From the sequence record NC_028268.1: a stretch of DNA of 38,049 nt. One strand, given 5' to 3'. Within the stretch, counting starts at the first letter, position 1. Every line of letters starts with the position of its first letter. Under the pieces are notes generated by a model. The model saw only the letters and a program-made list of their open reading frames with translations. It searched no databases and was not told the origin of the DNA. Positions 317 through 26,326 of this stretch are shown one piece after another. Position numbers and translations under genes: made by a program.

Positions 317-360
317 GTTAGAGACCCCTTTTCCGGTGTTCTGTCGAGGGCTTCTCTAAC
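317..360. repeat. Bipartite palindrome copy S1: GTTAGAGAC-N26-TTCTCTAAC
   Basis: Arms at 317-325 and 352-360, just upstream of ORF 391. Confidence 0.85.
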
Positions 361-390
361 ACTGCGCATACAACACTCGGGGTGGCCTGA

Positions 391-780
391 TTGGATGTTG
401 AGTACCAGCGTCTGTACGGTATCGAGTTCAGGGTGAAGGGTGTTCGGGGGTTGTACGGAGACGGCAGGTTCGGCAAAGCTATGGCTATAGCGGCATTCCT
501 GAGAACCCTGTCTGTTCTCTGGTTCATGCCCAGGGGTATGAGGCCCCATGTGGAGGTGTCGAAGGACTTCGGCGATGTCTGGCTCGAGTGGAGCGGCGAG
601 GGAGAGAGGCGTGTTTACATAGAGTTTATGCTATGCGGTGAGGGTTGCGAGTACGACGCCGAGGGTGTTCTGGAGATGGTTGGGTTCGACAGCAAGACGT
701 TCCGGAGCCTGCTAAACGCCTTCCTCAAGGAGGCTAGGCTGAGGAGTCTCCAGGCTACTGCGCCTCAGGGTGTGGGTTAG
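391..780 (+). CDS. Hypothetical protein (129 aa)
   Basis: ORF track (TTG start); abuts the next ORF at 781; codon usage typical of the genome. Confidence 0.7.
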   Translation: MDVEYQRLYGIEFRVKGVRGLYGDGRFGKAMAIAAFLRTLSVLWFMPRGMRPHVEVSKDFGDVWLEWSGEGERRVYIEFMLCGEGCEYDAEGVLEMVGFDSKTFRSLLNAFLKEARLRSLQATAPQGVG

Positions 781-1761
781 ATGGCCGTGCCCCCCGCCTC
801 CCGGGCCTGCCGAGGTGGCGGGGGGCGGGGCTGGGGGTTAGAGATTGTTCTGGCCGATCTTAGGCGGGGCTTCTCTAACCTCCTCGAGTGGGAGCTCCTC
901 AGTATAGTCGAGCTGAAGAGGCGGGGCCTAGGCCTCTCGGAGATAGCCAAGGCGGTTTACGGGACCAGCAGGAAGAGGTACAGGGTCTTCCGTATTCTGA
1001 GGCGTCTCCAGCGCATGGGTGTTCTCGACTGCCTACTCGAGGGCTCATGTTGCGCCCTGGGTGGGGAAGGCGACGGCGGCCATGTTGCGCCTGCCGAAGA
1101 TGCGCAACATGAAGGCGACGACGGGAGCGGGGAGGCGACATCGGAAGCAACATGGGAGGGGCTGCCTGGGAGGCTGGGGAGGACTCAGAAGCTTGTCATA
1201 GCGGCTCTGGCTATCCAGCTGGAGGCCACGCCCAGCATGATAGCTGCCTACGTCAACCATGCATACGGGAAACGGGTTTCCCGGAACGCTGTGTGGCACG
1301 CCCTCAAGAGGCTGTCAGCCCGGGGTGTCGTTGAGAGGCTACCCCGGGGCTACTACAGGCTCCGCAGGCTCTCCAGCGGCATCCTGGTGGAGAACCTCAG
1401 GGTGAGGGGTCGCATGGTATGGAGCACGAGAGAGGAGGGTAGGCCAGCCACGCTGGAGGAGGCGTTAATAACGGCGGCACTCAGAGACAGGACGTGGCCC
1501 GTGGAGCAGGCGGAACTCCTCTCACACGGCCCCCGCAAGCTGCTGGAGAAGGCAAGGCTGCTCGAAAGGCTGGGCTGGAGAATGACGGTTATGTATATAG
1601 ACAGGAAGAACGGCGCCCCCAGGCTGAAGCTGGAACACAGGCTCTGGAACACACCCATACCGGCAAGGCCGGAGGAGCTATACTCATGGGTAAACCTATA
1701 CAGGGAAGCCTCATCACTGGCAAGAGACCTCGCCGAACACATACTAGCGCGCACACGCTAG
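781..1761 (+). CDS. Tandem (winged) helix-turn-helix DNA-binding protein; regulator or replication initiator candidate
   Basis: Two HTH-like segments (LKRRGLGLSEIAKAVYG…RVFRILRRLQRMG and LGRTQKLVI…SRNAVWHALKRLSARGVVERLPRGYY) joined by a Gly/acidic linker. Confidence 0.7.
   Translation: MAVPPASRACRGGGGRGWGLEIVLADLRRGFSNLLEWELLSIVELKRRGLGLSEIAKAVYGTSRKRYRVFRILRRLQRMGVLDCLLEGSCCALGGEGDGGHVAPAEDAQHEGDDGSGEATSEATWEGLPGRLGRTQKLVIAALAIQLEATPSMIAAYVNHAYGKRVSRNAVWHALKRLSARGVVERLPRGYYRLRRLSSGILVENLRVRGRMVWSTREEGRPATLEEALITAALRDRTWPVEQAELLSHGPRKLLEKARLLERLGWRMTVMYIDRKNGAPRLKLEHRLWNTPIPARPEELYSWVNLYREASSLARDLAEHILARTR
837..879. repeat. Bipartite palindrome copy S2: GTTAGAGAT-N25-TTCTCTAAC (inside 5' part of ORF 781)
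   Basis: Arms at 837-845 and 871-879. Confidence 0.85.
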
Positions 1762-1819
1762 CCCATGTTGCGGGCGGGGGGTTCGTGGGCGCGCAATATT
1801 GGGGTTTGTGGTTGGGTTT

Positions 1820-2527
1820 TTATTGGCAGATTCTTTTTATGTTGTTTATGCGTTCGTCTAGGGTGAGGGCTGGTGCTCCTAATGTGGTTTCGTGGCTTGT
1901 GTTGATGCCTTGTTTCTTTAGGTGGTTGAGTATTTCTGCGAATATTAGTGCTGGTTTGCAGCCGGTTGTTTTTGCTGCTAGTGTGTCTGCTTCTAGTTCT
2001 TGTTCTTTTATTGTTGTTGCTTCGTATTTTGTGGTTTGTGCTAAGAGGGCGAGTGAGATTATTATTAGTAGTAGGTTGGCGGTGGGTTTTTCACTTTTCT
2101 TTGTTCTGTTTAGGTTTTTGATTGAGTCTTTGAGGCTGTCGAAGCTTATTTTGGTTAGTTGTCTTGTCGTGTAGGATGCGATGGCGTGGTTCTTCACTAT
2201 ATGGGCTACTTCGTGTGCTACGATGAATTTTATAACCTCTTCTGGCAGCTTATCCGCTAGTTCTCTACGGATAAACACTATTCCGTAGCCGCCTAGTCCT
2301 ATGGAGAATGCGAGCTCGTAGGCTGGTAGCTTTTCGTTCTCTTTAAACAGCGCCACTATTATTATGCCTCTTGAGCCCATTCTGGAGGCTAGTTCTTGTG
2401 CTAATGCTGTGTATTTGATGTCTAAGTTAGATAAGGCGAGGAGCAGAAGATCTATTAGCTCATCCTCCACACTTCTTTCGCTCAACTGCCTATTCCGACC
2501 TAAGTTTTTGGGGTGCTTCATGTTCAA
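1820..2527 (-). CDS. M48/HtpX-like zinc metalloprotease
   Basis: FIVAHEVAHIVKNH (HExxH) plus downstream EQELEAD, typical of family M48; AT-rich; alternative ATG at 2521. Confidence 0.8.
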   Translation of the reverse strand: MNMKHPKNLGRNRQLSERSVEDELIDLLLLALSNLDIKYTALAQELASRMGSRGIIIVALFKENEKLPAYELAFSIGLGGYGIVFIRRELADKLPEEVIKFIVAHEVAHIVKNHAIASYTTRQLTKISFDSLKDSIKNLNRTKKSEKPTANLLLIIISLALLAQTTKYEATTIKEQELEADTLAAKTTGCKPALIFAEILNHLKKQGINTSHETTLGAPALTLDERINNIKRICQ

Positions 2528-2561
2528 GATCCACTCAGCTTTTAAAGATAGTGCGTTATAC

Positions 2562-2570
2562 TATATAATA
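2562..2570 (-). promoter_or_regulatory. TATA box for the M48 protease gene
   Basis: TATATAATA about 35-40 nt upstream of the start, directly abutting palindrome S3. Confidence 0.55.
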
Positions 2571-2615
2571 TGTTAGAGAAGGTATTACCGCTATGCTGTG
2601 AAGTTTTCTCTAACA
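2571..2615. repeat. Bipartite palindrome copy S3: TGTTAGAGAA-N25-TTCTCTAACA
   Basis: Perfect 10-bp inverted repeat, arms at 2571-2580 and 2606-2615. Confidence 0.9.
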
Positions 2616-2893
2616 CGTGCTGGTGGTGTGAGCCCGATGCGAGCCTCGATCATAAATACCGTAGCCATGTAACATGACATCTATACTGCTTAGACTTACT
2701 CCAAATGAACCCACCCCACCTAGAGTTACGGCTTCCGGCCACGATGTAGGGAAGGGAGTTTTCCCTTGTTTCCAGCCTAGCACCCTCTGGGGAGGTTCCG
2801 ATTTTATTATTCTAGGGTTTTTCTGGGTGCCTCCTATAGTATTAGGAGTCATGGTGGCAAAGGCTGCATGTTAGAGTTTCCGATTACGTCGCG

Positions 2894-3877
2894 TTGCAGA
2901 GGCCTGGGTTGAGATATGGACTGTTTCTCATTATATCCGGTGGGGCGGCCTTGGTTCTGAGCTTCAATATTGAAGGACGGTTGTCCGAAGTCCTCATGGC
3001 TATTAGTGCGACCCTAACGGCCTCGGGTGCGATAATAGCCGCCCAGTCCTTGGCTCAACTGGAGATTCAAGAAGCCTTAGAGAGCAGAAGGGAGCATAAG
3101 AAAAGACTTGATAAGTTGGCAGAGCGTATCATCAGAGGTGACGCTGGTAGGATTGTATCTAACGCTATAGGGTTAGAGAAAACAAAATTTGACATACTCT
3201 ATTCAGAACCCTGCGATACACTTGAAGCATTGAAAGACGAGGAGCCTTATCTCCTGAAGGATCTAGACACTCATCTTGAAGGTAAGCCTATAAGTAAACT
3301 GCTAGATGTTTGCAGGAAGCATAAAAAGTCGGTAAAATCTTTAGATGAAGAATTGGATGAGATAGCTTCCAGAGTAGTTGATTTTGTGGTGCAGGAACTT
3401 GGACAGCAGTATAAAATTCTGGAAACGTATGACAATTCGTTTAAAGAATTCGTTAAAACTAAAGTATTAGCACCCACTATAAGAACCATACATAATAATG
3501 AGTCTCAATGGACGCTTGAGAATATAGTAAAAGAAGCACGTAGAATACAGGATGAAATAAAGATGGAAGTGAAATTGAAGGATACGTACAAAGGGGGTAT
3601 GTCAGGCATAGATGTATACATGTACGCGTTCAAGCTAGTATATGTTAAAGCTCATTTGCCGACAGAGGGTCCAGCCGTTCGCAATAACGTTCTGAGAGTG
3701 TTTAAAGAGGTATTTGAACAAAAGCTGGCCAGCTATGCCAAAGACCTAGTAGATAAGGTGGAGGAGACTTCATCATTAACGCGCAGTGCAGAAGAAATCA
3801 AGAAGCTAACGGTAAATCGTTTATACGAACTGAGGGAAAAAACGTATCTTCCAAACCTCTGCCAGTACGTAAAGTAA
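2894..3877 (+). CDS. Accessory membrane-anchored protein (two N-terminal TM helices plus helical/coiled-coil domain)
   Basis: 327-aa ORF, AT-rich, with hydrophobic N-terminal segments. Confidence 0.75.
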   Translation: MQRPGLRYGLFLIISGGAALVLSFNIEGRLSEVLMAISATLTASGAIIAAQSLAQLEIQEALESRREHKKRLDKLAERIIRGDAGRIVSNAIGLEKTKFDILYSEPCDTLEALKDEEPYLLKDLDTHLEGKPISKLLDVCRKHKKSVKSLDEELDEIASRVVDFVVQELGQQYKILETYDNSFKEFVKTKVLAPTIRTIHNNESQWTLENIVKEARRIQDEIKMEVKLKDTYKGGMSGIDVYMYAFKLVYVKAHLPTEGPAVRNNVLRVFKEVFEQKLASYAKDLVDKVEETSSLTRSAEEIKKLTVNRLYELREKTYLPNLCQYVK

Positions 3878-4097
3878 AATAGCGTTACTTCAAAGGGAGC
3901 CTTGCACTGCCTACCTATGTAAAACTTTGGTCGTCTTGGGCTCCTTGATTCATTATTTGAACATTATATATCACACCCGTTAATCATCGTGTTATTAAAG
4001 CTTTGCCAGCTATGGTTGGAGAAGTCAGCTCATAACATACTCAACCATCTCTTTAAACCCTGGATGGGCCCTGGAGGTTCTGTCTGCTTGCCTGGCT

Positions 4098-4289
4098 GTG
4101 GTGGGGCTCGGGGCCCAGGTTAGGGTTTTGAGGGGGTTGTTGGAGCTGTATCATGCTAGGTTGCCCGGCGATGTTAAACGCGGTATAGTGGATATGTTGG
4201 ATGAAGCCGAGGCTTTGAAGGCCGTCTTGAAGCGGGAGCTGGATCCGGTTTTGCGTAGGCTCGGAGACAAGGTGTTAGAGAACGGTTAG
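4098..4289 (+). CDS. Small hypothetical protein (63 aa)
   Basis: ORF track; amphipathic helical sequence; TTTAAA upstream; its 3' end overlaps S4. Confidence 0.55.
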   Translation: MVGLGAQVRVLRGLLELYHARLPGDVKRGIVDMLDEAEALKAVLKRELDPVLRRLGDKVLENG

Positions 4290-4319
4290 CCTGGGTTGCC
4301 TGTCCTGTTCTCTAACACC
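4271..4319. repeat. Bipartite palindrome copy S4: GGTGTTAGAGAAC…GTTCTCTAACACC
   Basis: Perfect 13-bp inverted repeat, with 25 nt between the 9-bp cores. Confidence 0.9.
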
Positions 4320-4344
4320 CTGGAGTCTAGGGTCTAGGCATGGT

Positions 4345-4388
4345 GTTAGAGGGAGGCTTTTTGCTCCAAGCTGGATGCTTTCTATTAC
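4345..4388. repeat. Degenerate palindrome copy: GTTAGAGGG-N26-TTCTATTAC
   Basis: Each arm matches 7/9 of the consensus at the correct spacing; left arm is preceded by GGT as in the best copies. Confidence 0.5.
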
Positions 4389-4430
4389 TCATGTATGATG
4401 CATAGTATTAGATGTTTGATAAAAGAATGG

Positions 4431-5222
4431 CTAGCGTTTTTGATGGCATAGATTTAGGGCTTCCTCTGCTATTTGTACTAAATAAGTTTTTTGAACAAAT
4501 CCTACTAATTCATTTATAGTCTTACTTGTTTCTTCCGTTATAGGGTTGTCGAGTTGCTTTAGTAGGATTCTTGTTCTATCTAGTATTTCTGTTGATCCCG
4601 TAGTTTCTGCTGCTCTTTTAATGATCTCTAGAGCTTCTTTTGGTCTTGGCATTGAAAATATATCGTGTCCTTGGCTGGAGGAGGTTAGTGGCGTAATGGC
4701 TAGGGAGCGGCTTTTAATGGCCTCTGGTAGGCCCCAGCAGATGATTATATATCCTTTGAATGGATCACTATAATTATGTTTCTTTGCTTCGGCAACAGCT
4801 TTAAGGAGCGTTAATAGCGAGGCTGCAATATCTGGCTTCATTGATTCTATTACTTGTTGTTGGGCTAATTCTCTTGTGTAATAAGCTTGATAGTATATTG
4901 CTCCTAGCACGAAGAGAGATATTATTACGCTAATTATAGTTAGCACGCCTGATGTTACATCCCATAAAGGGATAAAGCCTTTAATATATAAAAGCCAACT
5001 TACTACAATGATGACCAAAGAGACTACAAACAAAATTACACTTACAAGCTTTGGCTTCAGATCCATCATCTCCCAGAGAATACTTAGACTATAGCAATAC
5101 CATATTTTATTTTTATGGTTAGAGAAGCTTCTTATATGAGGATTGTAGTTGCCCTCTAACTCCGGATTTCTATGCTCTCTTGTAAGGAGTTGTCTCTGCG
5201 TCTCGTGGCTCCTGTTAATCAT
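4431..5222 (-). CDS. Accessory membrane protein (two TM helices); true start may be ATG 5069/5066
   Basis: 263-aa ORF, AT-rich; hydrophobic LVSVILFVVSLVIIVVSWLLY and VLTIISVIISLFVLGAIYY segments. Confidence 0.7.
   Translation of the reverse strand: MINRSHETQRQLLTREHRNPELEGNYNPHIRSFSNHKNKIWYCYSLSILWEMMDLKPKLVSVILFVVSLVIIVVSWLLYIKGFIPLWDVTSGVLTIISVIISLFVLGAIYYQAYYTRELAQQQVIESMKPDIAASLLTLLKAVAEAKKHNYSDPFKGYIIICWGLPEAIKSRSLAITPLTSSSQGHDIFSMPRPKEALEIIKRAAETTGSTEILDRTRILLKQLDNPITEETSKTINELVGFVQKTYLVQIAEEALNLCHQKR
5118..5160. repeat. Bipartite palindrome copy S5: GTTAGAGAA-N25-CCCTCTAAC
   Basis: Arms at 5118-5126 and 5152-5160; the right arm has 2 mismatches. Confidence 0.75.
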
Positions 5223-5261
5223 GGTTGATGGACGTGGCGGTGTCGGGGTGGGTATATAATA

Positions 5262-5312
5262 AGGTGTTAGAGAATGTTAGGGCACTATGCTGAGGAACCT
5301 TCTCTAACACCT
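5262..5312. repeat. Bipartite palindrome copy S6: AGGTGTTAGAGAA-N25-TTCTCTAACACCT
   Basis: Perfect 13-bp inverted repeat; TATATAAT at 5253-5260 lies immediately to the left. Confidence 0.9.
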
Positions 5313-5440
5313 ACTGTTGGCGCGAGCCCGTGTTGAGTCTTGATCTATCTATGAATGCTATAGCCTTGTAATGCATGGTTTATACTGCTTATGACTTCCG
5401 CCTCTGAGTTTTAACTACTTAAAGCCCTAACTCCAGTCAT

Positions 5441-5489
5441 GGTGTTAGAGAATGTTTTAGGCGGTTTTGAACAGTCGTTCTCTAACACC
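5441..5489. repeat. Bipartite palindrome copy S7: GGTGTTAGAGAA-N25-TTCTCTAACACC
   Basis: Perfect 12-bp inverted repeat; TTATTATA at 5491-5498 lies immediately to the right. Confidence 0.9.
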
Positions 5490-5572
5490 CTTATTATACG
5501 TTTCAGGTTGCTCCGTGCTGTTTCCAGTCTTCATCTAGTATGTTGCATGGCGCATATAGTATGTAGGGTGGG

Positions 5573-5851
5573 TTGGTGTCTGTGCATGTGGATAGGTTTG
5601 TAGCAGTAGTGGATTATATTATAGATATTGTTGCGGGTGTTTTGATGGCGTTCTTCATGGTGGTGTTTGGCTGGTTTCTGAAGGGAGCATATGAAGTGCA
5701 TAGGGCTGGTGCTTGCGATGGGCTCTGCATGAATCTATTTGTTCTGAGCCTGATAGGGTTCATGCTTGCTACCGCGCTTTCCCTCTTCTTTTCTAGGTCA
5801 ATACTGAGGAAGCTAGGGGGTGCAAGTGATGGTCCTAGAGTATGTGCGTAG
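5573..5851 (+). CDS. Small membrane protein (two TM helices)
   Basis: 92-aa ORF with two long hydrophobic stretches. Confidence 0.65.
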   Translation: MVSVHVDRFVAVVDYIIDIVAGVLMAFFMVVFGWFLKGAYEVHRAGACDGLCMNLFVLSLIGFMLATALSLFFSRSILRKLGGASDGPRVCA

Positions 5852-6308
5852 GCTTGTTGGGGCTAGGGAGAAGCCTGATCCCCGTGAGCTTTTGGGTTTG
5901 GTGGAGGCGGTTGATGCTGGGCAGCAGCAGGGTGGTGCGCCCCCGTTCGACTTGTATACGTTGCTTGAGGACGAGAAGGTTGGGCGCGAGCTGTGGCCCT
6001 ATATTCTGGGGTTTGTGGCGAGGGATACGAAGCTCACCTACTTTACGGAGAGGGATGAGGAGTACCTGTTCTGGAAGATCGAGGCGATAGCGACTAAGAT
6101 AGAGATGGCGCTGAACTCGCAGACCCCGCCGCCCGACCGGTTCCCCAGGGTTGAGGATTACGTGAAGGTTGTGGAGGCGCAGCGGCTGCTGGCGGACAAC
6201 CTGAGGGTGCTGATGCTGGCGGCCGTGAGGCGCTCCACACTGGGCTTCGAGAGGAGGCTGCAGGCGATGCGCCACTTCGTCTTCTCCTACTCGGACAGGA
6301 GGTTCTAG
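5829..6308 (+). CDS. Hypothetical viral protein (about 159 aa)
   Basis: ORF 5820..6308 with in-frame ATG at 5829; first gene of the GC-rich co-directional block. Confidence 0.7.
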   Translation: MVLEYVRRLVGAREKPDPRELLGLVEAVDAGQQQGGAPPFDLYTLLEDEKVGRELWPYILGFVARDTKLTYFTERDEEYLFWKIEAIATKIEMALNSQTPPPDRFPRVEDYVKVVEAQRLLADNLRVLMLAAVRRSTLGFERRLQAMRHFVFSYSDRRF

Positions 6309-6313: not shown

Positions 6314-7273
6314 TTGATGGGCGCGCTCATGCTGCTGGGCATGGCCCTCGGGGGGCTGGCGGGCCTGGGGGCTGGCTACCTGCTCTACCCCTCGAGGCCC
6401 GACCTGGCCCTCCTGGCGGGGCTGGGCGCCGGTTCGGCCCTGGGCTGGGCTATGGGGTTCTTCTACTGGAGCTTCGGGGTTCCACCGGCGTTCAAGCAGG
6501 CTATGCGGGCTGCTAGAACCGGGTTCCTTATTGTGGCTGTGGGGGCGGACAAGAAGGCCCGCCTCCTCCCGGGGTTCAGCGACGGCTTCGTGGTCCGCCC
6601 GGCGCCTAGGCCCTACAGGGATAAGTACGCGTGGGCGGCGGACGGGGAGAGCAGCTACCCTATCCACGGGGGCCGGGGGACCCAGCTCCTCGTAACATTC
6701 ATGGGCTACCCCTTCCCCCTGGAGGCCGGGAAGGCGGCGGCCGTCTCGAAGTTCAGGGAGAGGGGGTTCAGGAGCATTGAGGACCTGAAGACGGCGGTGG
6801 AGCTGCCTACTGTGGAGGAGATTGAGGCCCGGATGCGGGAGCTGGAGGCGGCTAGGGCCTCTATAGAGAAGATGGACGAGGGGGAGGTTAGGCGGCTCTA
6901 CGGCGAGGATAAGCGCCAGCTTCTCGCTGAGGTTGATAGGGAGCTGGAGCGGCTGGAGAGGGTTAGAGAACTCGTTAAGGAGTACGGCGGCGGCAGTTCT
7001 CTAACCGTTAACGTGGACGGCGCCACGGTGAGGGCCTCGGACCTCATCTCCTACCTCGTCTGGCGCCACCATCCGAGCGAGATCGACAGGATAGTGAAGG
7101 CTGAGACCAACGCGGTGCTCTCCAGGCTCTCCGCTGTGGACTGGCTGAGGCAGCTCCTGCCGGTCATCATAGTGACGGGTATGTTCGTGCTGGGTATCAT
7201 AGTGGTGGTGTACATGCTGAAGGGTGGCGGGCCCCCGGCGCCGGTCGAGTCCATAGCTATAGGGGGTGGGTAG
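6314..7273 (+). CDS. Membrane protein with N- and C-terminal TM helices and a central coiled coil (position analogous to fusellovirus B277)
   Basis: Hydrophobic termini and an EEIEARMRELEAARASIE coiled coil; lies upstream of a small gene and the ATPase. The homology is a synteny-based inference. Confidence 0.7.
   Translation: MMGALMLLGMALGGLAGLGAGYLLYPSRPDLALLAGLGAGSALGWAMGFFYWSFGVPPAFKQAMRAARTGFLIVAVGADKKARLLPGFSDGFVVRPAPRPYRDKYAWAADGESSYPIHGGRGTQLLVTFMGYPFPLEAGKAAAVSKFRERGFRSIEDLKTAVELPTVEEIEARMRELEAARASIEKMDEGEVRRLYGEDKRQLLAEVDRELERLERVRELVKEYGGGSSLTVNVDGATVRASDLISYLVWRHHPSEIDRIVKAETNAVLSRLSAVDWLRQLLPVIIVTGMFVLGIIVVVYMLKGGGPPAPVESIAIGGG
6961..7006. repeat. Bipartite palindrome copy S8 (inside CDS): GGTTAGAGAAC…GTTCTCTAACC
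   Basis: Perfect 11-bp inverted repeat, with 26 nt between the cores. Confidence 0.9.
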
Positions 7274-8573: not shown

Positions 8574-8625
8574 GATGTGTTAGAGAATGTTTTCTCGTGA
8601 TGGTCTAGTTGTTCTCTAACACATC
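8574..8625. repeat. Bipartite palindrome copy S9: GATGTGTTAGAGAA-N24-TTCTCTAACACATC
   Basis: Perfect 14-bp inverted repeat, the longest copy; TTTATAAA follows at 8627-8634. Confidence 0.92.
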
Positions 8626-8626
8626 C

Positions 8627-8634
8627 TTTATAAA
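8627..8634 (+). promoter_or_regulatory. TATA box (TTTATAAA) for ORF 8679
   Basis: Canonical archaeal TATA box 45 nt upstream of the ATG. Confidence 0.6.
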
Positions 8635-10102: not shown

Positions 10103-11368
10103 ATGCTGAGGCGTCGTGTTCTGATGGACGGCGGGGGCTCGGCTGGCTCCGCCCCCTCCTCCCCCGGCTCTTCTAGGCCCCCGGACTACAGCCTCTACGA
10201 GTCTCAACCCCGACCGGCACCCGCGTCCTGGAGCCCCCTGGGTGTGCTGGCCTCTGCTCTCGACGCCCCCTACAGTTTTGTCCAGGAGAGGGGGTGGGGG
10301 GTTGTTGAGAGGCTTAGGAGGAGGGCGTTGAGGGAGAAGGCTGAGGGGGACTATGCCGAGGGGTTTCTCTGGGCTCTGGGCGCCTCTGCCGCTAGCTTCG
10401 GCGTGGGCGTGGCGGCCGGTGTTACGGGGCTCTTCAGCCCTAGGGCCTGGAGGGAGGCTTTCCACGCCTTCATGCACCCGGGGGAGACTGTGAGGGCCGT
10501 GGCGTCCGACCCTCTGTCGTGGCCGTATCTTGCGGGGTCTGTGGTCGGGCCTGCTAAGCTGGGGAGGGCTGTTGGGCGGAGGCTGGGGAGGGTTAGAGAA
10601 CCCGATTTAGCCTCTACCAGCGAGGGTTCTCTAACACTTGTGGCCGCCAAGGGAGAAAGGCTCAGATGGGCGGCCAGGCTCGAGGCAAGAGGCCCCACAG
10701 TAGGGGTTAAGGGTGTGAAGCCCAGGCCCCCGCCAGACAGGCTCGTCACCCTCGAGACCCCGAGGGGTAGGGTTGAGCTGCTCGAGTCTAGGCGGGGCTC
10801 CACCGTTAGGAGGGTCTATAGGGCTGAGTACAGGGATGTGGGGAAGAAGCTGCTGGGGGTTGAGGAGTGGAGTGTCGAGGGCTGGCTGAGGCCTAGGTAC
10901 CGGTACCGGGGGCTGCTTGTCGACCCGGAGACGCCCGGGGCGGCCGTCCTCCTGGAGGCCCGGAGGCCGTTGTTGAGGGGTGTGGATCTGCCGCCTCCCA
11001 GACTGTGGGTCGAGCCTAGGCTTGCCGCTCCCGCCGGGGCTGTAGGCCTTATACTAGGCCTCGGCGCCGCCGGGACCGGTGCTCGGGGCGGTTTGGAGGG
11101 TGGTGCCGCTGGGCGGCCTGCTGAGGCGGGTGCCCGGGGGCTTGTGTCCGGGTCCTCTCTGGCCGGGGGTGAGGCCGCGGCCTCTACCCTGGCGGGGGCC
11201 TCGGCCGCGTCTTCCCCGGCGGAGCCCTCTGCAGCCTCAGCCGGGCGCGGGGGTCCTGAGGCTCCCCCGCTCCTGGGGTCTGGTTCCCGGGGGAGGCGTG
11301 GCAGGAGGGGGAAGCTGGCTTACTCGGAGATCCTGTATCCTGGCGGCGTGCTTCTGGAGCTTCTCTAG
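10103..11368 (+). CDS. Hypothetical (possibly virion-internal) protein with a hydrophobic segment and Gly/Ala/Ser-rich C-terminus
   Basis: 421-aa ORF; hydrophobic FLWALGASAASFGVGVAAGVTGLF segment and a basic tail. Confidence 0.65.
   Translation: MLRRRVLMDGGGSAGSAPSSPGSSRPPDYSLYESQPRPAPASWSPLGVLASALDAPYSFVQERGWGVVERLRRRALREKAEGDYAEGFLWALGASAASFGVGVAAGVTGLFSPRAWREAFHAFMHPGETVRAVASDPLSWPYLAGSVVGPAKLGRAVGRRLGRVREPDLASTSEGSLTLVAAKGERLRWAARLEARGPTVGVKGVKPRPPPDRLVTLETPRGRVELLESRRGSTVRRVYRAEYRDVGKKLLGVEEWSVEGWLRPRYRYRGLLVDPETPGAAVLLEARRPLLRGVDLPPPRLWVEPRLAAPAGAVGLILGLGAAGTGARGGLEGGAAGRPAEAGARGLVSGSSLAGGEAAASTLAGASAASSPAEPSAASAGRGGPEAPPLLGSGSRGRRGRRGKLAYSEILYPGGVLLELL
10592..10635. repeat. Bipartite palindrome copy S10 (inside CDS): GTTAGAGAACCC…GGGTTCTCTAAC
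   Basis: Perfect 12-bp inverted repeat, with 26 nt between the cores. Confidence 0.9.
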
Positions 11369-14882: not shown

Positions 14883-15172
14883 TGGCCTCGGCAACGTTGC
14901 CTCCCCCGCCGGACGTGCTTACGGGCGTTGGCCTGGACCAGCTGATATCCAGCTTCGCTTCGTGGTGGTCCGGCGCCACGTTCGGCCTCTTCGGCCCGGT
15001 GCTGGCCGTGCTGGCGGTCGTAACGGTGTTCTTGAAGACGCGGAGCGCCTCGGCAACCGCCGTTGTCAGCCTGGTGCTCGCCGCCTTCCTGGGTAGGGAG
15101 TGGCTGATGCTGGTGGCCGCCCTGTCCCTGGCGGCGCTGCTGTGGCAGGTGTGGAGGGCATCCACGGACTAG
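14882..15172 (+). CDS. Small membrane/virion protein (96 aa)
   Basis: ATG at 14882 overlaps the previous TGA (TGATG); 3' part of track ORF 14666..15172; very hydrophobic. Confidence 0.7.
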   Translation: MASATLPPPPDVLTGVGLDQLISSFASWWSGATFGLFGPVLAVLAVVTVFLKTRSASATAVVSLVLAAFLGREWLMLVAALSLAALLWQVWRASTD

Positions 15173-15182
15173 CCGCATATAT
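15170..15182 (+). promoter_or_regulatory. Promoter element TAGCCGCATATAT upstream of capsid gene 1
   Basis: An identical 13-mer occurs at 15518-15530; both precede capsid-like genes. Confidence 0.6.
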
Positions 15183-15202
15183 ATCTCGGAGGCCTGGGGG
15201 CG

Positions 15203-15520
15203 ATGCAGGGCTTCATAGCCTATCTTGTGGGCTTCGCGGTTGTGGCCGGGGTGGCGGTGGCCCTGGGTATAACGCTGGGGTTCTTCGCCGACATAGCTAG
15301 CAGTCTGACGTACACCACTACCACGACTTCGGTAGACCCTTCTACCGGCCAGACGGTGACTATAACACAGACCAACTACTACGTGCCGCAGGAGTACATG
15401 AACGTGATAGACATGGCCCAATCCCTGGGCGGCACCGGGGTCACGCTGGCGATAGCAGCGCTGATAGTGGGCCTGGCCCTTCTGCTGATAGCTGTGATCA
15501 GGCAGACTGGCGGGGTGTAG
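15203..15520 (+). CDS. Spindle-virus capsid protein (VP1/VP3-like, two hydrophobic helices)
   Basis: 105 aa with a helix-loop-helix hydrophobic pattern; clearly paralogous to 15548..15814 (MQGFxAYLVGFA…AQSLGGTGxTLAIAALIVGLA). Confidence 0.75.
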   Translation: MQGFIAYLVGFAVVAGVAVALGITLGFFADIASSLTYTTTTTSVDPSTGQTVTITQTNYYVPQEYMNVIDMAQSLGGTGVTLAIAALIVGLALLLIAVIRQTGGV

Positions 15521-15530
15521 CCGCATATAT
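15518..15530 (+). promoter_or_regulatory. Promoter element TAGCCGCATATAT upstream of capsid gene 2
   Basis: Duplicate of 15170-15182, followed by the RBS-like GGTGGTGA. Confidence 0.6.
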
Positions 15531-15547
15531 AGGGTGGTGAACAGGGG

Positions 15548-15846: not shown

Positions 15847-17139
15847 TTGGCCCGGGTGCCAGTTTTGAGGCTGTCAGCCGTACTTGCGGGTGGCCTCCTG
15901 CTCCTCTTGCTGGTGGCCCCTATCCCTGGGTGGACCCCTGCGGCTGCTCAGGCGGGCGTCTTCCTGGAGATAGTGCTGCCGGACGGGAGTGGCTACAGGT
16001 TCGGCCCCCTGATACTCGAGAGGGGCGATCTAGTGGCCCCCAGCTTCTACAGGCTGGTGCTCGACGGGTCGGGCTACGTCGAGTTCGACCTCGCGCCCGA
16101 GGCCGGTACTGTGGCGGCCCTGGTGAGGCCCTACAAGACGCCGGACTGGAACGCTATAGCCAGCAACGACGAGGCCCTCTCCTGGAGGCTCTACGTCTCC
16201 CAGGCCTCAGACGCCTACGAGTTCATGAGGAGGGACAGCGCCCTAAACGCCTACGTGGCTGGCGACGGGGCCGCCCGGGACGGCGTGCTCGTGTGGGTCC
16301 TAGCCTACACCTACAGCGACAGGCTGGAGATACACGCTACCGGCAGCGGGAGCGCCTCGTGGACCGGGAGCCCCGCGGGCCCCGCTGCCAAGGTACTGAT
16401 AGGCTCTAACATGTTCAACGGGAGCGAGGTCCCGGCCCAGCGGTGGATCGGGGAGATATGGGCTGTTGTGGTGCATTCGCAGCCCGCCGTCGACCCTAGG
16501 GGCTACGAGGTCCCCGCTTCGGGGCTGGAGCTCCTATTCGACCCGGGCTGGTACCTCGGCGGGGGCCTGTTCGCCGGGCTCTCGGGGTCCGGGTTCGTGT
16601 ACGGGCGCCTGGTAGGTGATGCTGTGCTCGAGGCGTCTGCGCCTAGGATCTGGGTGGTTAGAGACGCCTACACAGACCAATACCTGCACGTTTCTCTAAC
16701 ACCCTACGGCTCGAGGCTGAGGGTGCTCGACGCCTCCGGCGAAGTCCTGGCAGAGTATAGTGTGATATCAGACAACAGGGTGGGGGACCTGGTGCTCGAC
16801 TACCAGGTACCCTGGCCCCCGGCGCCGGGATCCGGCGGTGGTGATGGGGGGCTGGGGGCTCTGGACCTGCTGGCCGTCCCCGTTGTGCTGCTCGCCCTTG
16901 CAGCCCCGGGGGTTGCCCTGGCATCCGGTCCGGTTTGGGGGTTCACCTTCGCCGTCTTCGCCGGGGTCGCTGGCTGGGTCTCACTGTCGCGGGCCGGTGG
17001 CTTGGGGGTTGAGGGGAGCGTGTGGCAGGGGCTGGCGCTGCTCGCCCTGGTCAGCATGGTTCTGGCGGTGGTCCTATCTGCGGTCAAGCTCCTCGCCTGG
17101 AGGGGCGGCCTCAGGGAGCCCAGGGGTTTGGACCTGTGA
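15847..17139 (+). CDS. Secreted, membrane-anchored protein with a probable LamG/concanavalin A-like domain
   Basis: Signal peptide; …VLIGSNMFNG…WIGEIWAVVVHSQP resembles the LamG C-terminal motif; three C-terminal TM helices. Confidence 0.6.
   Translation: MARVPVLRLSAVLAGGLLLLLLVAPIPGWTPAAAQAGVFLEIVLPDGSGYRFGPLILERGDLVAPSFYRLVLDGSGYVEFDLAPEAGTVAALVRPYKTPDWNAIASNDEALSWRLYVSQASDAYEFMRRDSALNAYVAGDGAARDGVLVWVLAYTYSDRLEIHATGSGSASWTGSPAGPAAKVLIGSNMFNGSEVPAQRWIGEIWAVVVHSQPAVDPRGYEVPASGLELLFDPGWYLGGGLFAGLSGSGFVYGRLVGDAVLEASAPRIWVVRDAYTDQYLHVSLTPYGSRLRVLDASGEVLAEYSVISDNRVGDLVLDYQVPWPPAPGSGGGDGGLGALDLLAVPVVLLALAAPGVALASGPVWGFTFAVFAGVAGWVSLSRAGGLGVEGSVWQGLALLALVSMVLAVVLSAVKLLAWRGGLREPRGLDL
16657..16700. 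repeat. Bipartite palindrome copy S11 (inside CDS): GTTAGAGAC-N26-TTCTCTAAC
   Basis: Arms at 16657-16665 and 16692-16700. Confidence 0.8.
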
Positions 17140-21699: not shown

Positions 21700-21766
21700 C
21701 CGTGGCGGAAGTCGATTATCACGGTTTTTGTAAGCACATTATCTATAAACTCTATTTTCGGGGGTT

Positions 21767-22096: not shown

Positions 22097-22125
22097 CCCT
22101 CCCACACCCCGCGGCGCATATCTTT

Positions 22126-22548: not shown

Positions 22549-22577
22549 GAGCATCATCCTCTTGGGGCGGGGTGTGG

Positions 22578-22913: not shown

Positions 22914-22932
22914 CCACCCATTTAACCGGGCG

Positions 22933-22975
22933 GTTAGAGAAGCACGATCCGGCTACTGTCTTGACGTTCTCTAAC
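22933..22975. repeat. Bipartite palindrome copy S12: GTTAGAGAA-N25-TTCTCTAAC
   Basis: Intergenic, upstream of the zincin gene; arms at 22933-22941 and 22967-22975. Confidence 0.9.
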
Positions 22976-23006
22976 ACCTCCGCATTTATGCTCTGGGGAG
23001 GGCTGG

Positions 23007-23984
23007 TTGTTCGAGGGCAGCGAGTACCTCTACCCCCTCTACAGGCACCTATACGGGCTTGGCCTGACTAGGGAGGAGTGGCTCCGTGCCAGGGAGGCGT
23101 TCAGGGAGAGGGCTAGGAGGTGTCCGCGCTGCGCCTTTATGGACGTCGGGCTGGCGGCCAGGCACGCTAGGTCGCTGAGGCAGTGGATGAGGTCGCCCAA
23201 CAGGTACGACATACCCGGCGTTGACTCCCCGGAGGTGGGCTGGTGGCTCGAGTCCCGGGATCTCCTGGAGCCTTATAGTGAGGAGTCCAAGAGCATCCTG
23301 GGCGAGGTTGAGAGGGCTAGGAGGGCGGTGGAGCTTTACTTCGGCGAGCCGGTGGCCACGAGGGTCAGGGTTAGGTACGAGGAGGAGATGGATAAACCGG
23401 GGGTTCTGGGGTACTGGGAACACAGGCCCGGCTGGGACTATGGAGTGCTGGCCGTTAAGAGGGGGCTGGGCGAGAGGTTCAAGGACGTGGTCGTCCACGA
23501 ACTGGTGCACGCCTGGAGCCTCGGCAGGTACAGCGACGTTCCTTACGGGGAGAAGGCGGGGAACCCGGCGTGGAACATGAGAGTGGTTGAGGGTAGCACG
23601 GAGACGGCTGCCAAGCGGGTGCTCTCGTTGCTGGGCTTGAAGCCGTCCGCAGTGGCCTACTCGGCCCTCGTCGAGAGGCTCTCGGAGGGGGGCGCGGAGA
23701 GGGGTGTAGAGGCGGCCCTCGAGTTCCTCCGGGCGGCCAGGGAGAGGAGGCGGCCTAGGGGCGAGTACATGAGGGAGGCTGTGCTGCTGAAGCACACGGA
23801 AGGCCCCGACGTCTACGTGTCAAAACCGCCGGAGAGGCTCCCCGGGGAGGCGAGGGACCTGCTCTCGCCTAAACCCTTCCCCGCCGAGCTCGCCCTCGAC
23901 AGGACTCTGAGGCCTTTCGCAGAAGCCCTTAAAACCCTCAGGAGGCAGAGGAGGAGGGGCGGGAGGAGGCGGCGTTGGGGCTAG
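23007..23984 (+). CDS. Zincin (gluzincin-like) metallopeptidase domain protein
   Basis: VVVHELVHAW (HExxH) followed by VVEGSTE (candidate third-ligand Glu); basic C-terminus. Confidence 0.7.
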   Translation: MFEGSEYLYPLYRHLYGLGLTREEWLRAREAFRERARRCPRCAFMDVGLAARHARSLRQWMRSPNRYDIPGVDSPEVGWWLESRDLLEPYSEESKSILGEVERARRAVELYFGEPVATRVRVRYEEEMDKPGVLGYWEHRPGWDYGVLAVKRGLGERFKDVVVHELVHAWSLGRYSDVPYGEKAGNPAWNMRVVEGSTETAAKRVLSLLGLKPSAVAYSALVERLSEGGAERGVEAALEFLRAARERRRPRGEYMREAVLLKHTEGPDVYVSKPPERLPGEARDLLSPKPFPAELALDRTLRPFAEALKTLRRQRRRGGRRRRWG

Positions 23985-24232
23985 ACCCCTTTGTCATCCA
24001 GGCCCGGGAGGGCGACAGGGAGGCCTGGACCCGGGCGAACAGGCTCGCTGCGGGGCTGATGGCTATAGGCTACCCGGTGGAGGTCAAGCCCCTGCCCCGG
24101 AGCTCGCGGGAGAGGCTCGTAATAGTAACCCCCCTGGGAGGGCGTATAGCCGACCCCGGGGAAGGGGAGCTGCGTGATATACTGGACTACCCCCACATCC
24201 ACGCGGGCTACATTGTAGACGCCGAGCACTAA
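23975..24232 (+). CDS. Hypothetical protein (85 aa)
   Basis: ORF track; overlaps the end of the previous gene. Confidence 0.6.
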   Translation: MGLDPFVIQAREGDREAWTRANRLAAGLMAIGYPVEVKPLPRSSRERLVIVTPLGGRIADPGEGELRDILDYPHIHAGYIVDAEH

Positions 24233-24278
24233 ACCCCCCAGGGTCTCCCGGGGTGGATTCCGAACTTGGCGGCGGCGT

Positions 24279-24324
24279 GTGTTAGAGAATAAGGCTAAAT
24301 TCCTTACAGCATTTTCTCTAACAC
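24279..24324. repeat. Bipartite palindrome copy S13: GTGTTAGAGAA-N24-TTCTCTAACAC
   Basis: Perfect 11-bp inverted repeat, intergenic. Confidence 0.9.
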
Positions 24325-24397
24325 CCCACACACCCCCGACCAGCCACGACACACATACACCCAACCCCCCGCCACACACAGGCCGGGCGGAAGCACA

Positions 24398-24589
24398 GTG
24401 GGGGGTGGCGGGTTGGACTGGGCGAGCGTCTTCCAGTTTTACGCCCGTCTCAAGAGGGAGCTTAGGGAGGCGGTGCACGGTTGCGAAGCAAGCCCTGAGT
24501 GCAAGAGGATCGTGTGGGAGGCCGTCTCGAGAGTCCTGGAGGAGAAGGCAGTAGAACTCGAGGAGATGGCCGCTTCTTCTCCCAAGTAG
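24398..24589 (+). CDS. Small hypothetical protein (63 aa)
   Basis: ORF track; helical sequence with a CxxxxxC pair. Confidence 0.5.
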   Translation: MGGGGLDWASVFQFYARLKRELREAVHGCEASPECKRIVWEAVSRVLEEKAVELEEMAASSPK

Positions 24590-24761
24590 GCTATAAAATA
24601 TTGAAGATTATGAATTCGAATGTACGAGTGTCTGTTTGTGTTTTTAATTATCTGAGTTTCACTAACGTATATTTTTCTTTGGGCTGTTCGATAGGGCGCA
24701 TGTGGAATACGGATAAGCGCCTATGCTTGGTGGACTGCTTTAATATCTAGGTGATGACAAG

Positions 24762-25229
24762 TTGAGTTCAATGATTCGTCATAGGGAATCATACATACTG
24801 TCGCTGATAGTAGGGGTTCTCTCCGCATCTATACTGTGGTTGGCTTCTAAGGGGGTCATCAGCCCTAGTGTTTATCCTATAATGGCATCTGTCTCAGCCA
24901 CACTCTTGGGCTTTGTATTCACGGCGGAACAGTTAGCAATAATGATATTGGCCAACGAAAATAGTACAGTGGCTAAAATCCTGCGGAAACACAACCCAGG
25001 GTATATTAACGAGCTTCTCGGGCTAGCAGATCTTACCATGGTTTCACTATTCTCCACGGCTATAGTAAGTGGAGCAGCGTCCATCTTCGCTTTCTATCCA
25101 AAGTTTATTGCTTATACAACAATGTTCTTGGTGGGGGTGAGCATGATGTCATTACTTATCTTAATTCTTAACGTGCAGAAACTCTATCATGATCATTTTA
25201 ATGTAGACCTTTCCTCGAATAACCGGTAG
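24762..25229 (+). CDS. Accessory four-TM membrane protein
   Basis: 155 aa, AT-rich, four hydrophobic helices; RBS GGTGA upstream. Confidence 0.75.
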   Translation: MSSMIRHRESYILSLIVGVLSASILWLASKGVISPSVYPIMASVSATLLGFVFTAEQLAIMILANENSTVAKILRKHNPGYINELLGLADLTMVSLFSTAIVSGAASIFAFYPKFIAYTTMFLVGVSMMSLLILILNVQKLYHDHFNVDLSSNNR

Positions 25230-26248
25230 GATTCGCGTATCAACTCGCTGTTTTTCAGAGCCAATTCTTTAAGAATGTTTAGTGAGGCAGTGGTGTCAGT
25301 GCTTCTGAGGTATCTCCCACCACTTCGTGCTTTTGGTATGCTAACTTCCCTAAATACCAAGGCATCCTCTACAAGGTCGACTACTCTTCTAGGGCTTCCA
25401 AAGGTTATCTTGAAACGTTGGAGGGATTCTTCTCCTAATTCTTCTCTTATTGAATTAAACAGCTCTAGCAACTCATCTATCGTGAAATCTAACTCCTGAT
25501 CCTTACCCCTTCCAGCGTGCTGTATAGCTTCGTATAACTGTCCTCTTATCTTGGTTATATCTATACCCAGCTTTTCTAACAGCATGTCTATGGTCCTTTG
25601 GTTTGTGAGCCGGGCTTTATTTGATATTTTGAGTTTTATATCGATCTGTTTTATTGTAGAATCACTATACAGTTTTAGTAGCTCTTCAGTGTCTGGTCTA
25701 TAGAGTTGCCTAATGGCTATTCTGATTTTGTCACAGTTCTTCAACAATACATGTATCTTTTGCGGCCCAATTCTCTGGCAATATTCTTGGGCCGCTCCTC
25801 TGAATAACGTGCTGAGGATTCCATGTTTTGGAACAAAGCTAGTTACTTCTACAAGGGCTATACCTGGCTTAATCAAAATCATATGAGCATACTCATAGAG
25901 ATCCTCATCATCGCTGAGCTTTTTAGAAAGGGACGCATGTCTTCGACTTTTTCTGTCATAGAAATGTGACAAACCTTCATGCCTAAGATATCCGTAAACG
26001 ATACCTAGGTATTTTTCTCCATTAGCTGGAAGTTCTTTTATATCTGTTATTATGGGGATTTTTTCTGGCGAGAAGGGATTGTTATTGGAGTTCAGCGGAT
26101 ACGAGGTGGATTGGGCGTACTTCACCACATCTGTAATAAATTGATAGTTCAGCTTGATAACTTTTTTATCTTCAGTGTAGGCTTCAGCGATAACTCCATA
26201 AGCATAAATGTTCCTTTTGTATTCGTGGGAGGCCAAGTGAATCACCAT
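25193..26248 (-). CDS. Accessory soluble protein (351 aa), convergent with the four-TM gene
   Basis: Long AT-rich ORF; TATA-like sequence and palindrome S14 upstream. Confidence 0.8.
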   Translation of the reverse strand: MVIHLASHEYKRNIYAYGVIAEAYTEDKKVIKLNYQFITDVVKYAQSTSYPLNSNNNPFSPEKIPIITDIKELPANGEKYLGIVYGYLRHEGLSHFYDRKSRRHASLSKKLSDDEDLYEYAHMILIKPGIALVEVTSFVPKHGILSTLFRGAAQEYCQRIGPQKIHVLLKNCDKIRIAIRQLYRPDTEELLKLYSDSTIKQIDIKLKISNKARLTNQRTIDMLLEKLGIDITKIRGQLYEAIQHAGRGKDQELDFTIDELLELFNSIREELGEESLQRFKITFGSPRRVVDLVEDALVFREVSIPKARSGGRYLRSTDTTASLNILKELALKNSELIRESYRLFEERSTLK

Positions 26249-26278
26249 GGAACATTCGAACCTCGTGCTACAATTTAA

Positions 26279-26326
26279 GTGTTAGAGAATAATCAGCGAC
26301 AGATTAGGTCGATATTTCTCTAACAC
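26279..26326. repeat. Bipartite palindrome copy S14: GTGTTAGAGAA-N26-TTCTCTAACAC
   Basis: Perfect 11-bp inverted repeat; last copy seen in the genome. Confidence 0.9.

Follow-up and report, generated by a model that had tools for sequence, protein, structure and literature searches.

We propose that a spaced inverted repeat in APSV1, a temperate spindle-shaped virus of Aeropyrum, is most likely a set of viral operators of a familiar kind, but with an unusual geometry. We analyzed 38,049 nucleotides of this virus (NC_028268.1), which we refer to as the window; its first 8 kb are identical to HE580238 / NC_028268. The repeat, which we call element E, has the form GTTAGAGAA-N24-26-TTCTCTAAC, or two inverted 9-bp arms on either side of a spacer. 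Our interpretation is that E is a putative operator or upstream site in double-stranded DNA, specific to the APSV1-like family, that would be recognized by two inverted protein subunits about 34 bp apart. We give this a probability of roughly 0.45. E sites exist, are under selection, avoid coding sequence, and are enriched beside AT-rich boxes. We infer that E is bound as double-stranded DNA and that binding would affect transcription, either by repression in the lysogen or by activation upon induction. E appears to have no described counterpart.

Copies of E in the APSV1 genome

Exact matches to GTTAGAGAA-N20-30-TTCTCTAAC occur 10 times in the window and never in 100 dinucleotide shuffles. 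The 8-mer GTTAGAGA occurs 29 times, versus 1.3 expected, and almost always as a facing pair. If up to three mismatches in the arms are allowed, then there are 14 intact copies, as compared to 0.07 in block shuffles. The spacer is 24 nt long in two of these copies, 25 nt in seven, and 26 nt in five. Besides the intact copies, there are three decayed ones (4345-4388, 4015-4058, and approximately 2746-2785).

The original prediction, which was made from this sequence, listed 14 copies and the degenerate one at 4345, and claimed that their density was far beyond chance and that the distance between the cores was fixed at 24-26 nt. We recovered exactly these copies, and both claims held up. (Its start positions differ from ours by 1-5 nt because it counted flanking pairs.) It also described the repeat as genome-wide, which is not accurate: the intact copies span 317-26324, with 10 of the 14 in the first 10.6 kb, and we found no copy in the part of the window from 26.3 to 38 kb. 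The copies, named by their first position, are as follows.

317-360: E317, GTTAGAGAC-N26-TTCTCTAAC, between orf1 and orf2 and 31 nt upstream of the orf2 start; promoter-like box GCATACAAC 5 nt past the right arm
837-879: E837, GTTAGAGAT-N25-TTCTCTAAC, in the poorly conserved N-terminal extension of orf3, right after a GC-rich hairpin (784-831)
2572-2614: E2572, in the intergenic region of the divergent orf4 and orf5; TATATAAT (2562-2569) 2 nt from the left arm; part of a duplicated block of about 270 bp
2746-2785: decayed copy, GTAGGGAA...CCTAGCACC with indels, which aligns with E5444 within the duplicated block
4015-4058: decayed copy, GTTGGAGAA-N25/26-CTCTTTAAAC, upstream of orf6
4274-4316: E4274, overlapping the orf6 stop codon, in the gap between the convergent orf6 and orf7
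4345-4388: degenerate copy, GTTAGAGGG-N26-TTCTATTAC, with two mismatches in each arm, 28 nt after E4274
5118-5160: E5118, right arm CCCTCTAAC, inside orf7 as annotated; AT-rich box (5103-5116) 1 nt from the left arm
5266-5308: E5266, paralog of E2572, in the region between the divergent orf7 and orf8; TATATAAT (5253-5260) 5 nt from the left arm
5444-5486: E5444, upstream of the orf8-orf12 block; TTATTATA (5491-5498) 4 nt past the right arm
6962-7005: E6962, inside orf10, in the frame VRE...SLT; not kept in the L180 ortholog
8579-8620: E8579, between orf12 and orf14; TTTATAAA (8627-8634) 6 nt past the right arm
10592-10635: E10592, inside orf16, in the frame VRE...SLT
16657-16700: E16657, inside orf23, in the frame VRD...SLT
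22933-22975: E22933, between orf31 and orf32; GCATTTATG (22982-22990) 6 nt past the right arm; orf32 start 32 nt from the arm
24281-24322: E24281, between orf33 and orf34, with no adjoining AT-rich box
26281-26324: E26281, in the region between the divergent orf36 and orf37; TTAAATTG on the minus strand (26271-26278) 2 nt from the arm; orf36 start 33 nt from the arm

Non-coding sequence makes up just 9.7% of the genome, yet eight of the 14 intact copies are wholly non-coding and another overlaps a stop codon (P ~ 1e-6). Three copies are truly intragenic (in orf10, orf16, and orf23), and all of these are in the frame that is translated as VRE...SLT (VRD...SLT in orf23), so the TAG and TAA that the arms hold in other frames are avoided. 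The two remaining "coding" copies, E5118 at the start of orf7 and E837 in the extension of orf3, are doubtful. The annotated start of orf7 (4431-5222, minus strand) at 5222 is probably wrong, and the 51 residues that follow it do not resemble coding sequence. An ATG in the same frame at 5069 begins a segment that resembles a signal peptide or transmembrane helix (MMDLKPKLVSVILFVV), and judging from the sequence, orf7 very probably starts there. If so, E5118 adjoins an AT-rich box upstream of the gene. The orf3 extension around E837 is in differing frames among the relatives.

The APSV1 record has 53 annotated genes, nearly all on the + strand and nearly all hypothetical. The linear map begins and ends within the gene for an SSV-type integrase, and a tRNA-like att fragment (36552-36605) lies inside this gene. 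We also note two islands of low GC content (2000-6000 and 24000-27000), at 41-47% versus about 60-65% elsewhere. They contain the minus-strand genes and most of the clustered copies of E, and the matching region is variable in relatives.

Conservation in APSV1-like viruses

We scanned IMG/VR and a collection with one genome per species (596 Gb) for the pattern of E, which has 18 fixed bases. In IMG/VR, APSV1 itself was the only record with multi-copy matches. The scan of one genome per species gave 46 loci, as compared to about 26 chance matches expected, and the multi-copy matches were only in contigs from metagenome-assembled genomes (MAGs) of Acidilobaceae and Desulfurococcales. Protein look-ups added L180, L181, and L189-L191. 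In total, about 18 contigs carry E, with 57 distinct copies whose spacers are 23-27 nt long (mode 25-26). The contigs encode homologs of the integrase and of orf2, 3, 6, 9-12, 14, 16-22, and 44-47, so they are from APSV1-like viruses or proviruses.

The arms are identical across contigs that range from 41% to 61% GC and whose proteins are 30-80% identical (30-50% for the distant relatives). That the arms are identical despite 30-50% protein identity shows selection on the nucleotide sequence itself. By these comparisons, E is a clade-wide and strongly selected cis element. The original prediction had called the repeats a cis-acting site system of the virus, and this holds up.

Several copies are at orthologous positions. 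E is present in the 5' end of orf3, past a GC-rich hairpin, in APSV1, L041, L054, L030, L180, L181, and L191, and it is present upstream of orf14 in APSV1, L180, L060, and L191. Both L180 and L181 have an ortholog of E8579 in which the arms, part of the spacer (GTGATGGTnTnGTTG), and the adjoining box are preserved. Between orthologs, the arms remain intact, but the spacers have diverged and differ in length by 1-2 nt. In L177, which is the remnant of a degraded provirus, the copy near orf3 has a spacer of 34 nt and a mutated arm. The stretches of host genes in L177 and L189 contain no copy of E. L191 contains three tandem pairs (E, then 10-20 nt, then another E).

The GC-rich hairpin in the 5' end of orf3 (GCCCCCCGCC...GGCGGGGGGC, at 784-831, directly before E837) is itself conserved in L180, L054, L041, L030, and L018/L181, and it is translated as MA.PPA...GGGGRG.

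Two other families of repeats resemble E. First, three metagenome contigs (L069, L073, and L119) share a sequence with two tandem E-like units whose arms alternate (GTTAGAGAA-26-TTCTCTAAC-25-GTTTTAGAA-26-TTCTCTAAC); they have no homology to APSV1. Second, contigs from Omnitrophota MAGs (L032, L033, L037, L038, L042, L055, L058, L059, and L061) contain a hairpin, ttaCCCCGTTAGAGAA-N24-TTCTCTAACGGGGtttac, which has the core and the loop length of E, but with a 13-bp stem. The loops of these hairpins are largely unrelated to each other. Several lie directly before the coding start of a pilin-like GFTLIEL sequence, and an ATG upstream is in frame with some of them. Rfam had no match to these hairpins, nor to E within the window.

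Copies of E are dispersed, intergenic, and palindromic, and there is a superficially identical family in the Omnitrophota, so we considered whether E could be a selfish miniature palindrome that colonizes intergenic sites where it is tolerated, similar to a miniature inverted-repeat transposable element (MITE) or a REPIN. But orthologous copies are kept across deep divergence, which implies that E is maintained rather than inserted. Also, the interiors of the copies are unrelated, there are no target-site duplications, and Pfam identifies neither a transposase nor a RAYT among the proteins of APSV1. We find this explanation hardly credible. REPINs do resemble E, since they too pair short conserved sequences in inverted orientation, with a preferred spacing, in intergenic regions, but their loops are homologous, they spread across the chromosome, and they have a RAYT gene, none of which holds for E. 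We rejected repetitive extragenic palindromic (REP) sequences and REPINs on similar grounds: the loops of E are unrelated, there is no E in the host parts of L177 and L189, and Pfam finds no Y1 transposase. MITEs were rejected because the copies of E have unrelated interiors and their flanks (ggt...acc) are inverted repeats instead of direct ones.

Arms, spacers, and the hairpin alternative

The innermost pair of the arms (A9:T1') is the least conserved and varies in 8 or 9 copies, so the hard core of E is 8 bp. None of the 57 copies has a compensatory change within this core: it is the sequence that is conserved, and not pairing alone. The arms are about 34 bp apart (center to center), with a tolerance of 1-2 bp in either direction.

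The positions just outside the arms (-1/+1) tend to be complementary if all copies are pooled (26 pairs versus 14.9 expected, P = 1e-4). If copies are permuted within each genome, then the effect is much weaker (P = 0.07). The symmetric flank varies by lineage: it is GGT...ACC in APSV1 and L191 and A...T in others. Such a lineage-bound preference would fit co-evolving extended half-sites. Five of 46 copies have palindromic extensions of 3-5 pairs into the spacer, with differing sequences (P = 3e-4).

The spacers had been described as unrelated, which is partly correct. The 14 spacers have no unusual matches to the rest of the genome: the longest are 9-11 nt, the same as for shuffled spacers, and we rejected guide-like spacers for this reason. 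On the other hand, E2572 and E5266 are within a duplication of about 270 bp with 72% identity. Also, if the spacers of all 57 copies are oriented, then a weak motif appears beside one arm: GAA|(G/T)GTTTTG, or GAA|AAAC in some genomes. The motif contains 4.7 bits in total, as compared to 2.5 ± 0.14 for shuffled spacers. It accounts for an excess of TTAG in the spacers, and because of it many copies have a polarity. Spacers are not AT-rich. A/T tracts adjoin the arms on the spacer side.

The original prediction left it open whether E is a site in double-stranded DNA for a dimeric or tetrameric protein or a stem with a variable loop. That alternative still stands, and the evidence leans towards DNA. 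As RNA (or single-stranded DNA), E would be a stem-loop held by a protein that reads the stem and measures the length of the loop, and it might act in processing, stability, or translational control of polycistronic transcripts. E is a perfect inverted repeat, and inward extensions of at least three pairs with differing sequences would favor a hairpin. Two arm mismatches, in E5118 and in the orf3-proximal copy of L018, are compatible with G:U pairs on the strand of the neighboring gene. The spacers contain an oriented motif. And in the orf6 family (discussed below), the start codon is at the 3' end of the loop, the right arm provides codons 2-4, and the stop codon is in the next E, so there would be a hairpin at each end of the mRNA.

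However, the hairpin is predicted to be unfolded at the temperature of the host. According to ViennaRNA, copies of E fold at -12 to -30 kcal/mol at 37 °C, but at 90 °C, which is in the host's growth range, this falls to 0 to -2 kcal/mol, and the arms alone are at +3 to +3.8 kcal/mol. The stem of E is AU-rich, with three GC pairs in nine, unlike the structured RNAs of hyperthermophiles. Besides the lack of compensatory changes in the 8-bp core, the -1/+1 covariation is largely gone within genomes, and there is no matching Rfam family. Several copies lie between divergent genes beside presumed TATA boxes and may not be transcribed. Finally, a hairpin gives no reason for a loop of 25±1 nt. We consider an RNA hairpin unlikely, and we do not place it lower because of the inward extensions, the polarity, and the orf6-type copies that are transcribed and partly translated.

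Promoter context

In APSV1, the start codons of genes without E are preceded, at about 27 nt, by a box of the type (C)CGCATATATA; this is the distance expected for leaderless archaeal mRNAs. Near E, AT-rich boxes are found a few nucleotides outside of an arm. The arm is followed by ACATCC and TTTATAAA before orf14, by ACCC and TTATTATA before the orf8 block, and by ACC and TTATTATATA towards orf7. Before orf36, the arm is followed by AC and TTAAATTG, with the start codon 33 nt from the arm. For orf32, 6 nt separate the arm from GCATTTATG and the start is 32 nt from the arm; for orf2, these are 5 nt, GCATACAAC, and 31 nt. As far as the sequence can tell, the arm-to-start distances of 31-33 nt for orf2, orf32, and orf36 fit leaderless promoters.

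Across all relatives, 30 of 112 flanks contain an AT-rich 8-mer at a distance of 0-8 nt, as compared to 15 expected (P = 2e-4). In APSV1 alone, this was true for 8 of 28 flanks (background 9%). The order of arm, 5-6 nt, and box is kept in the orf14-type promoters of three very divergent viruses.

The regions between the divergent orf4 and orf5 (2530-2800) and between the divergent orf7 and orf8 (5225-5500) are a non-coding duplication with 72% identity. The duplicated blocks are laid out as box, E, 135 nt, E, and box, and the second E of the orf4/orf5 block has decayed. In the orf7/orf8 block, the two copies are E5266 and E5444; a layout with two E between divergent genes is also found in L030. 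The 135 nt between the copies are conserved as well and could be a small RNA or a promoter.

We also noticed that orf21, orf22, orf26, orf29, orf30, and orf31 have a box CCGCATATATA about 27 nt upstream of the start codon (e.g., at 15170-15202 and 15520-15547). These genes lack E and are presumably late genes, so their boxes suggest a putative second class of promoter.

In the mechanism that we propose, two copies of one reading head would bind the two inverted arms of 9-10 bp, and a rigid or DNA-bending protein body would set the distance between the arms at about 34 bp from center to center. Because the protein body would fix the distance, the spacer would be held in length but hardly in sequence. 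The sites would mostly act next to core promoters, where a TATA-like box is 0-8 bp away from an arm and E is either upstream of the box or between the box and the start codon. Together, the sites might be the operators or upstream sites of a single regulon that includes the accessory, replication, and structural blocks (0.3-26.3 kb). The block with the integrase and the small regulators (26.7-38 kb) would not belong to it.

E might instead be a protein-binding site in double-stranded DNA whose role is not in transcription, such as genome folding and loop anchoring, initiation or pausing of replication, or packaging. Copies inside genes and between convergent genes would make sense for such a site. 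A cluster of copies occupies the low-GC region that precedes the replication module (4.0-5.5 kb), and another copy lies right after the DnaA-like orf12; this last copy keeps part of its spacer in three viruses. The A/T tracts beside the arms within the spacer are another argument for this role. Furthermore, according to a Hi-C study of A. pernix K1, 19 chromatin loops start from the APSV1 provirus, including one to a type I-A CRISPR array (PMC10769869). But these loops reach other chromosomal loci, and our scan returned no E from an Aeropyrum chromosome, although it returned no Aeropyrum record at all, the provirus included (these may have been masked). Also, such a role does not account for the enrichment beside TATA-like boxes or for the strong exclusion from coding sequence. 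Nor are the spacers AT-rich. The archaeal origin box does not match the arms, and neither does the origin element ucm, ATTATACAAAC (PMC12141716), which we rejected as its sequence is unrelated to them. Overall, we view a role outside of transcription as unlikely.

Candidate binding proteins and the orf6 family

Our candidates for the protein that binds E are, in order, the orf6 family, orf3, orf44, orf45, orf48, or a factor from the host. The first of these is encoded between copies of E:

4098-4289, + strand: orf6, a small helical-hairpin protein whose last codons (VLEN) are the left arm of E4274

The orf6 family has 60-90 residues and forms 14 clusters in a large collection of proteins, none of which is named. 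Twelve of 14 members begin with M(WWC)FSN, where the start codon is in the spacer of E and the right arm is translated (TTC TCT AAC). The C-terminus, ...VLEN/K, is encoded by the left arm of the next E. There are three of these E-orf6-E units in L181 and one or two each in L190, L189, L026, L180, L191, and APSV1. The predicted fold of orf6 is a confident helical hairpin and a third helix (pLDDT, the predicted local distance difference test, is 80). The model had no informative structural match.

A more speculative idea, which we consider decidedly unlikely, is that E and the orf6 proteins make up a new two-part module of hyperthermophilic archaeal viruses. The orf6 protein would be a non-canonical DNA- or RNA-binding protein whose gene is framed by the arms (start codon in the spacer, FSN from the right arm, LEN from the next left arm). 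It would recognize sites about 34 bp apart and would define exchangeable cassettes that regulate themselves. A further possibility is that the similar stem and loop length in the Omnitrophota reflect a recognition principle that is shared across domains, rather than coincidence.

E might also mark the boundaries of modules or cassettes, with small genes such as orf6 as the cassettes. It would then serve for recombination, be it site-specific or through a short conserved linker that lets related viruses exchange DNA. The E-orf6-E units are found three times in L181 and also in L190, L189, L026, and APSV1. Similarly, APSV1 and L041 have an E on either side of orf2, a gene that L030 and L180 lack; at the orf2-less site, the latter two have a single E whose spacer is like that of E317. 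In the relatives, E is concentrated in the variable region between orf3 and orf9. However, the only recombinase that we found is the SSV-type integrase, which has its own att site within its gene. Other indels, such as the loss of orf15-16 in L060, are not bounded by E, and intergenic sites are natural ends of homology in any case. An all-against-all BLAST comparison gave homology blocks that end inside E, as if recombination had occurred in the spacers. But the L181/L026 junction is the start codon of an orf6-like gene, and the one in L017/L021 comes from drift in the spacer of an orthologous E. With these apparent breakpoints explained, the idea of a cassette boundary has lost most of its support, and we think it is very unlikely.

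The ends of the arms (GTTAGAG and CTCTAAC) recall the core sites of integrons (GTTRRRY and RYYYAAC), which would favor a cassette boundary. Like attC sites, E is an imperfect palindrome with conserved 7-bp ends and a variable center that often lies right at a small gene's stop codon, and two sites flank some genes. But relative to attC, the order of the core-like ends is reversed (GTTAGAG...CTCTAAC, on both strands), and E has a single stem of 9-10 bp and a fixed length. Nor does E have the L boxes, extrahelical bases, IntI, or arrays of promoterless cassettes of integrons. We rejected attC because the order of the ends is wrong and there is no IntI, only the SSV-type integrase.

The second candidate, orf3, has a helix-turn-helix (HTH), a winged helix with a near-invariant helix (RNAVWQALRRL), and an α/β C-terminal part. 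It adjoins the integrase in all relatives, and E is in its 5' end in seven genomes. The orf3 family is broad, with about 54 clusters at 50% identity, and is a recurrent HTH and winged-helix neighbor of the integrase in archaeal integrated elements. In those elements that lack E, it may be an excision or regulatory factor.

Other potential regulators are orf44 (an ArnR1-like winged helix, E-value = 5e-61), orf45 (MarR-like), and orf48 (ribbon-helix-helix). All three are in the E-free region, beside a different system of palindromes (34114-34202). This is the promoter region of the divergent orf44 and orf45, and it contains an 18-bp perfect inverted repeat (CTATCACCTATACTCTAG / CTAGAGTATAGGTGATAG, 46 nt apart) as well as repeated units of TATACTCTAG. 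These palindromes probably serve orf44 and orf45 as their switch operator. Pfam identified no Nop domain, transposase, RAYT, IntI, or Cas protein among the proteins of APSV1.

Weighing the operator interpretation

Several observations weigh against a role for E as an operator. An AT-rich box is beside at least one arm in only about 45% of copies, and our promoter assignments are made from sequence. E is also found between convergent genes (E4274 and in L044) and at stop codons, so it is not purely a promoter element, and three copies lie within genes. For a simple dimer, 34 bp from head to head is an unusually long span. The weak oriented motif seems to give E a polarity that a symmetric dimer would not need, and inward extensions of at least three pairs appear to be better predicted by pairing than by half-sites. 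In the orf6 family, the start codon is in the spacer and the right arm is translated, so those copies of E must be transcribed, which is compatible with a role in RNA.

The cognate binder is at the level of a candidate, too. In its model, orf6 is a plain helical hairpin with no recognized DNA-binding fold. As for orf3, integrated elements without any E (L183, L184, L185, and L187/L188) encode homologs of it, so its tie to E is not exclusive; homologs in four E-less elements weaken the case for orf3 as an E-specific binder.

We nevertheless favor double-stranded DNA, mostly as a transcriptional site and to a lesser extent in other roles, because the hairpin is unstable at 90 °C, the core has no compensatory changes, the flanks are lineage-bound, and a narrow tolerance in length is combined with copies that lie beside boxes between divergent genes.

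Comparison with known systems

E has inverted half-sites at a fixed distance, and the sequence of the half-sites is conserved among relatives, which is characteristic of bipartite operators. The comparisons to NikR, CIRCE, KorB, and F55 that follow are analogies from general knowledge and do not imply membership in those systems. The operator of NikR from E. coli is GTATGA-N16-TCATAC; each half-site is read by one module, and the body of the oligomer sets the distance. E may be similar in that it has two short inverted half-sites and a long spacer that is fixed in length and free in sequence. It differs in that its spacer is 25 bp instead of 16, there are dozens of copies per genome, there is no NikR-like protein, and binding is only putative.

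The CIRCE operator of HrcA, TTAGCACTC-N9-GAGTGCTAA, controls heat-shock regulons in bacteria. It is at promoters and is transcribed, and roles as DNA and as RNA have been discussed. CIRCE would be comparable to E in its inverted 9-bp arms and its unconserved spacer of fixed length, but its spacer is just 9 bp, versus 25 in E, and its arms are unrelated in sequence.

Binders are known for the O_B sites of KorB in plasmid RK2 and for the F55 sites of SSV1 (at the promoters T5, T6, and Tind), which are compact palindromes or tandem repeats. The possible parallel with E is a short site that occurs about a dozen times in a mobile genome, with some copies at promoters and others distant or intragenic, and that is tied to maintenance versus the active cycle. 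In contrast to these, E is bipartite with a 25-bp gap, and its binder is a candidate.

We rejected several other systems. CRISPRs and viral mini-CRISPRs have direct repeats of about 24-37 nt and spacers of about 30-40 nt, while the arms of E are inverted, 9-10 nt long, and dispersed. An intrinsic terminator does not fit, as E has three GC pairs in nine, a 25-nt loop, and a downstream consensus (ACACC) that is not T-rich. To our knowledge, the consensus of origin recognition boxes (ORBs) does not match the arms of E. TIGR-Tas, which was raised by a weak Foldseek match to TasH, is similar to E in having a conserved or palindromic stem and a variable interior of about 26 nt and in occurring in archaeal viruses (PMC12045711). 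However, TIGRs are in tandem arrays beside a Tas gene with a Nop domain, and box C/D motifs flank their two spacers of 8-12 nt (PMC12045711), whereas E is dispersed, with no Nop domain and no fixed internal motifs. Thus, the statement in the original prediction that the repeat does not match CRISPR, att, REP, or MITE architecture is correct, as E fails at least one defining feature of each. E also appears to be undescribed: neither 9-mer was in the relevant literature that we searched, including the AGV1 preprint and the Hi-C paper (PMC10769869), a scope that did not extend to the original description of APSV1.

Implications

We know of only a handful of regulators that control genes in hyperthermophilic archaeal viruses, and of none from Aeropyrum viruses. 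E offers a ready-made map of a putative regulon for a temperate spindle-shaped virus, with 14 sites that are kept over a whole uncultured clade. The 18-base pattern is also a practical marker, as it drew APSV1-like proviruses from 596 Gb of genomes with few false positives. If our interpretation is correct, then 9-bp heads that are 25 bp apart imply that a protein assembly gauges roughly three helical turns of DNA at 90 °C, which would be interesting structurally. The circuit for lysogeny and induction in APSV1 would be directly testable with a 43-bp probe.

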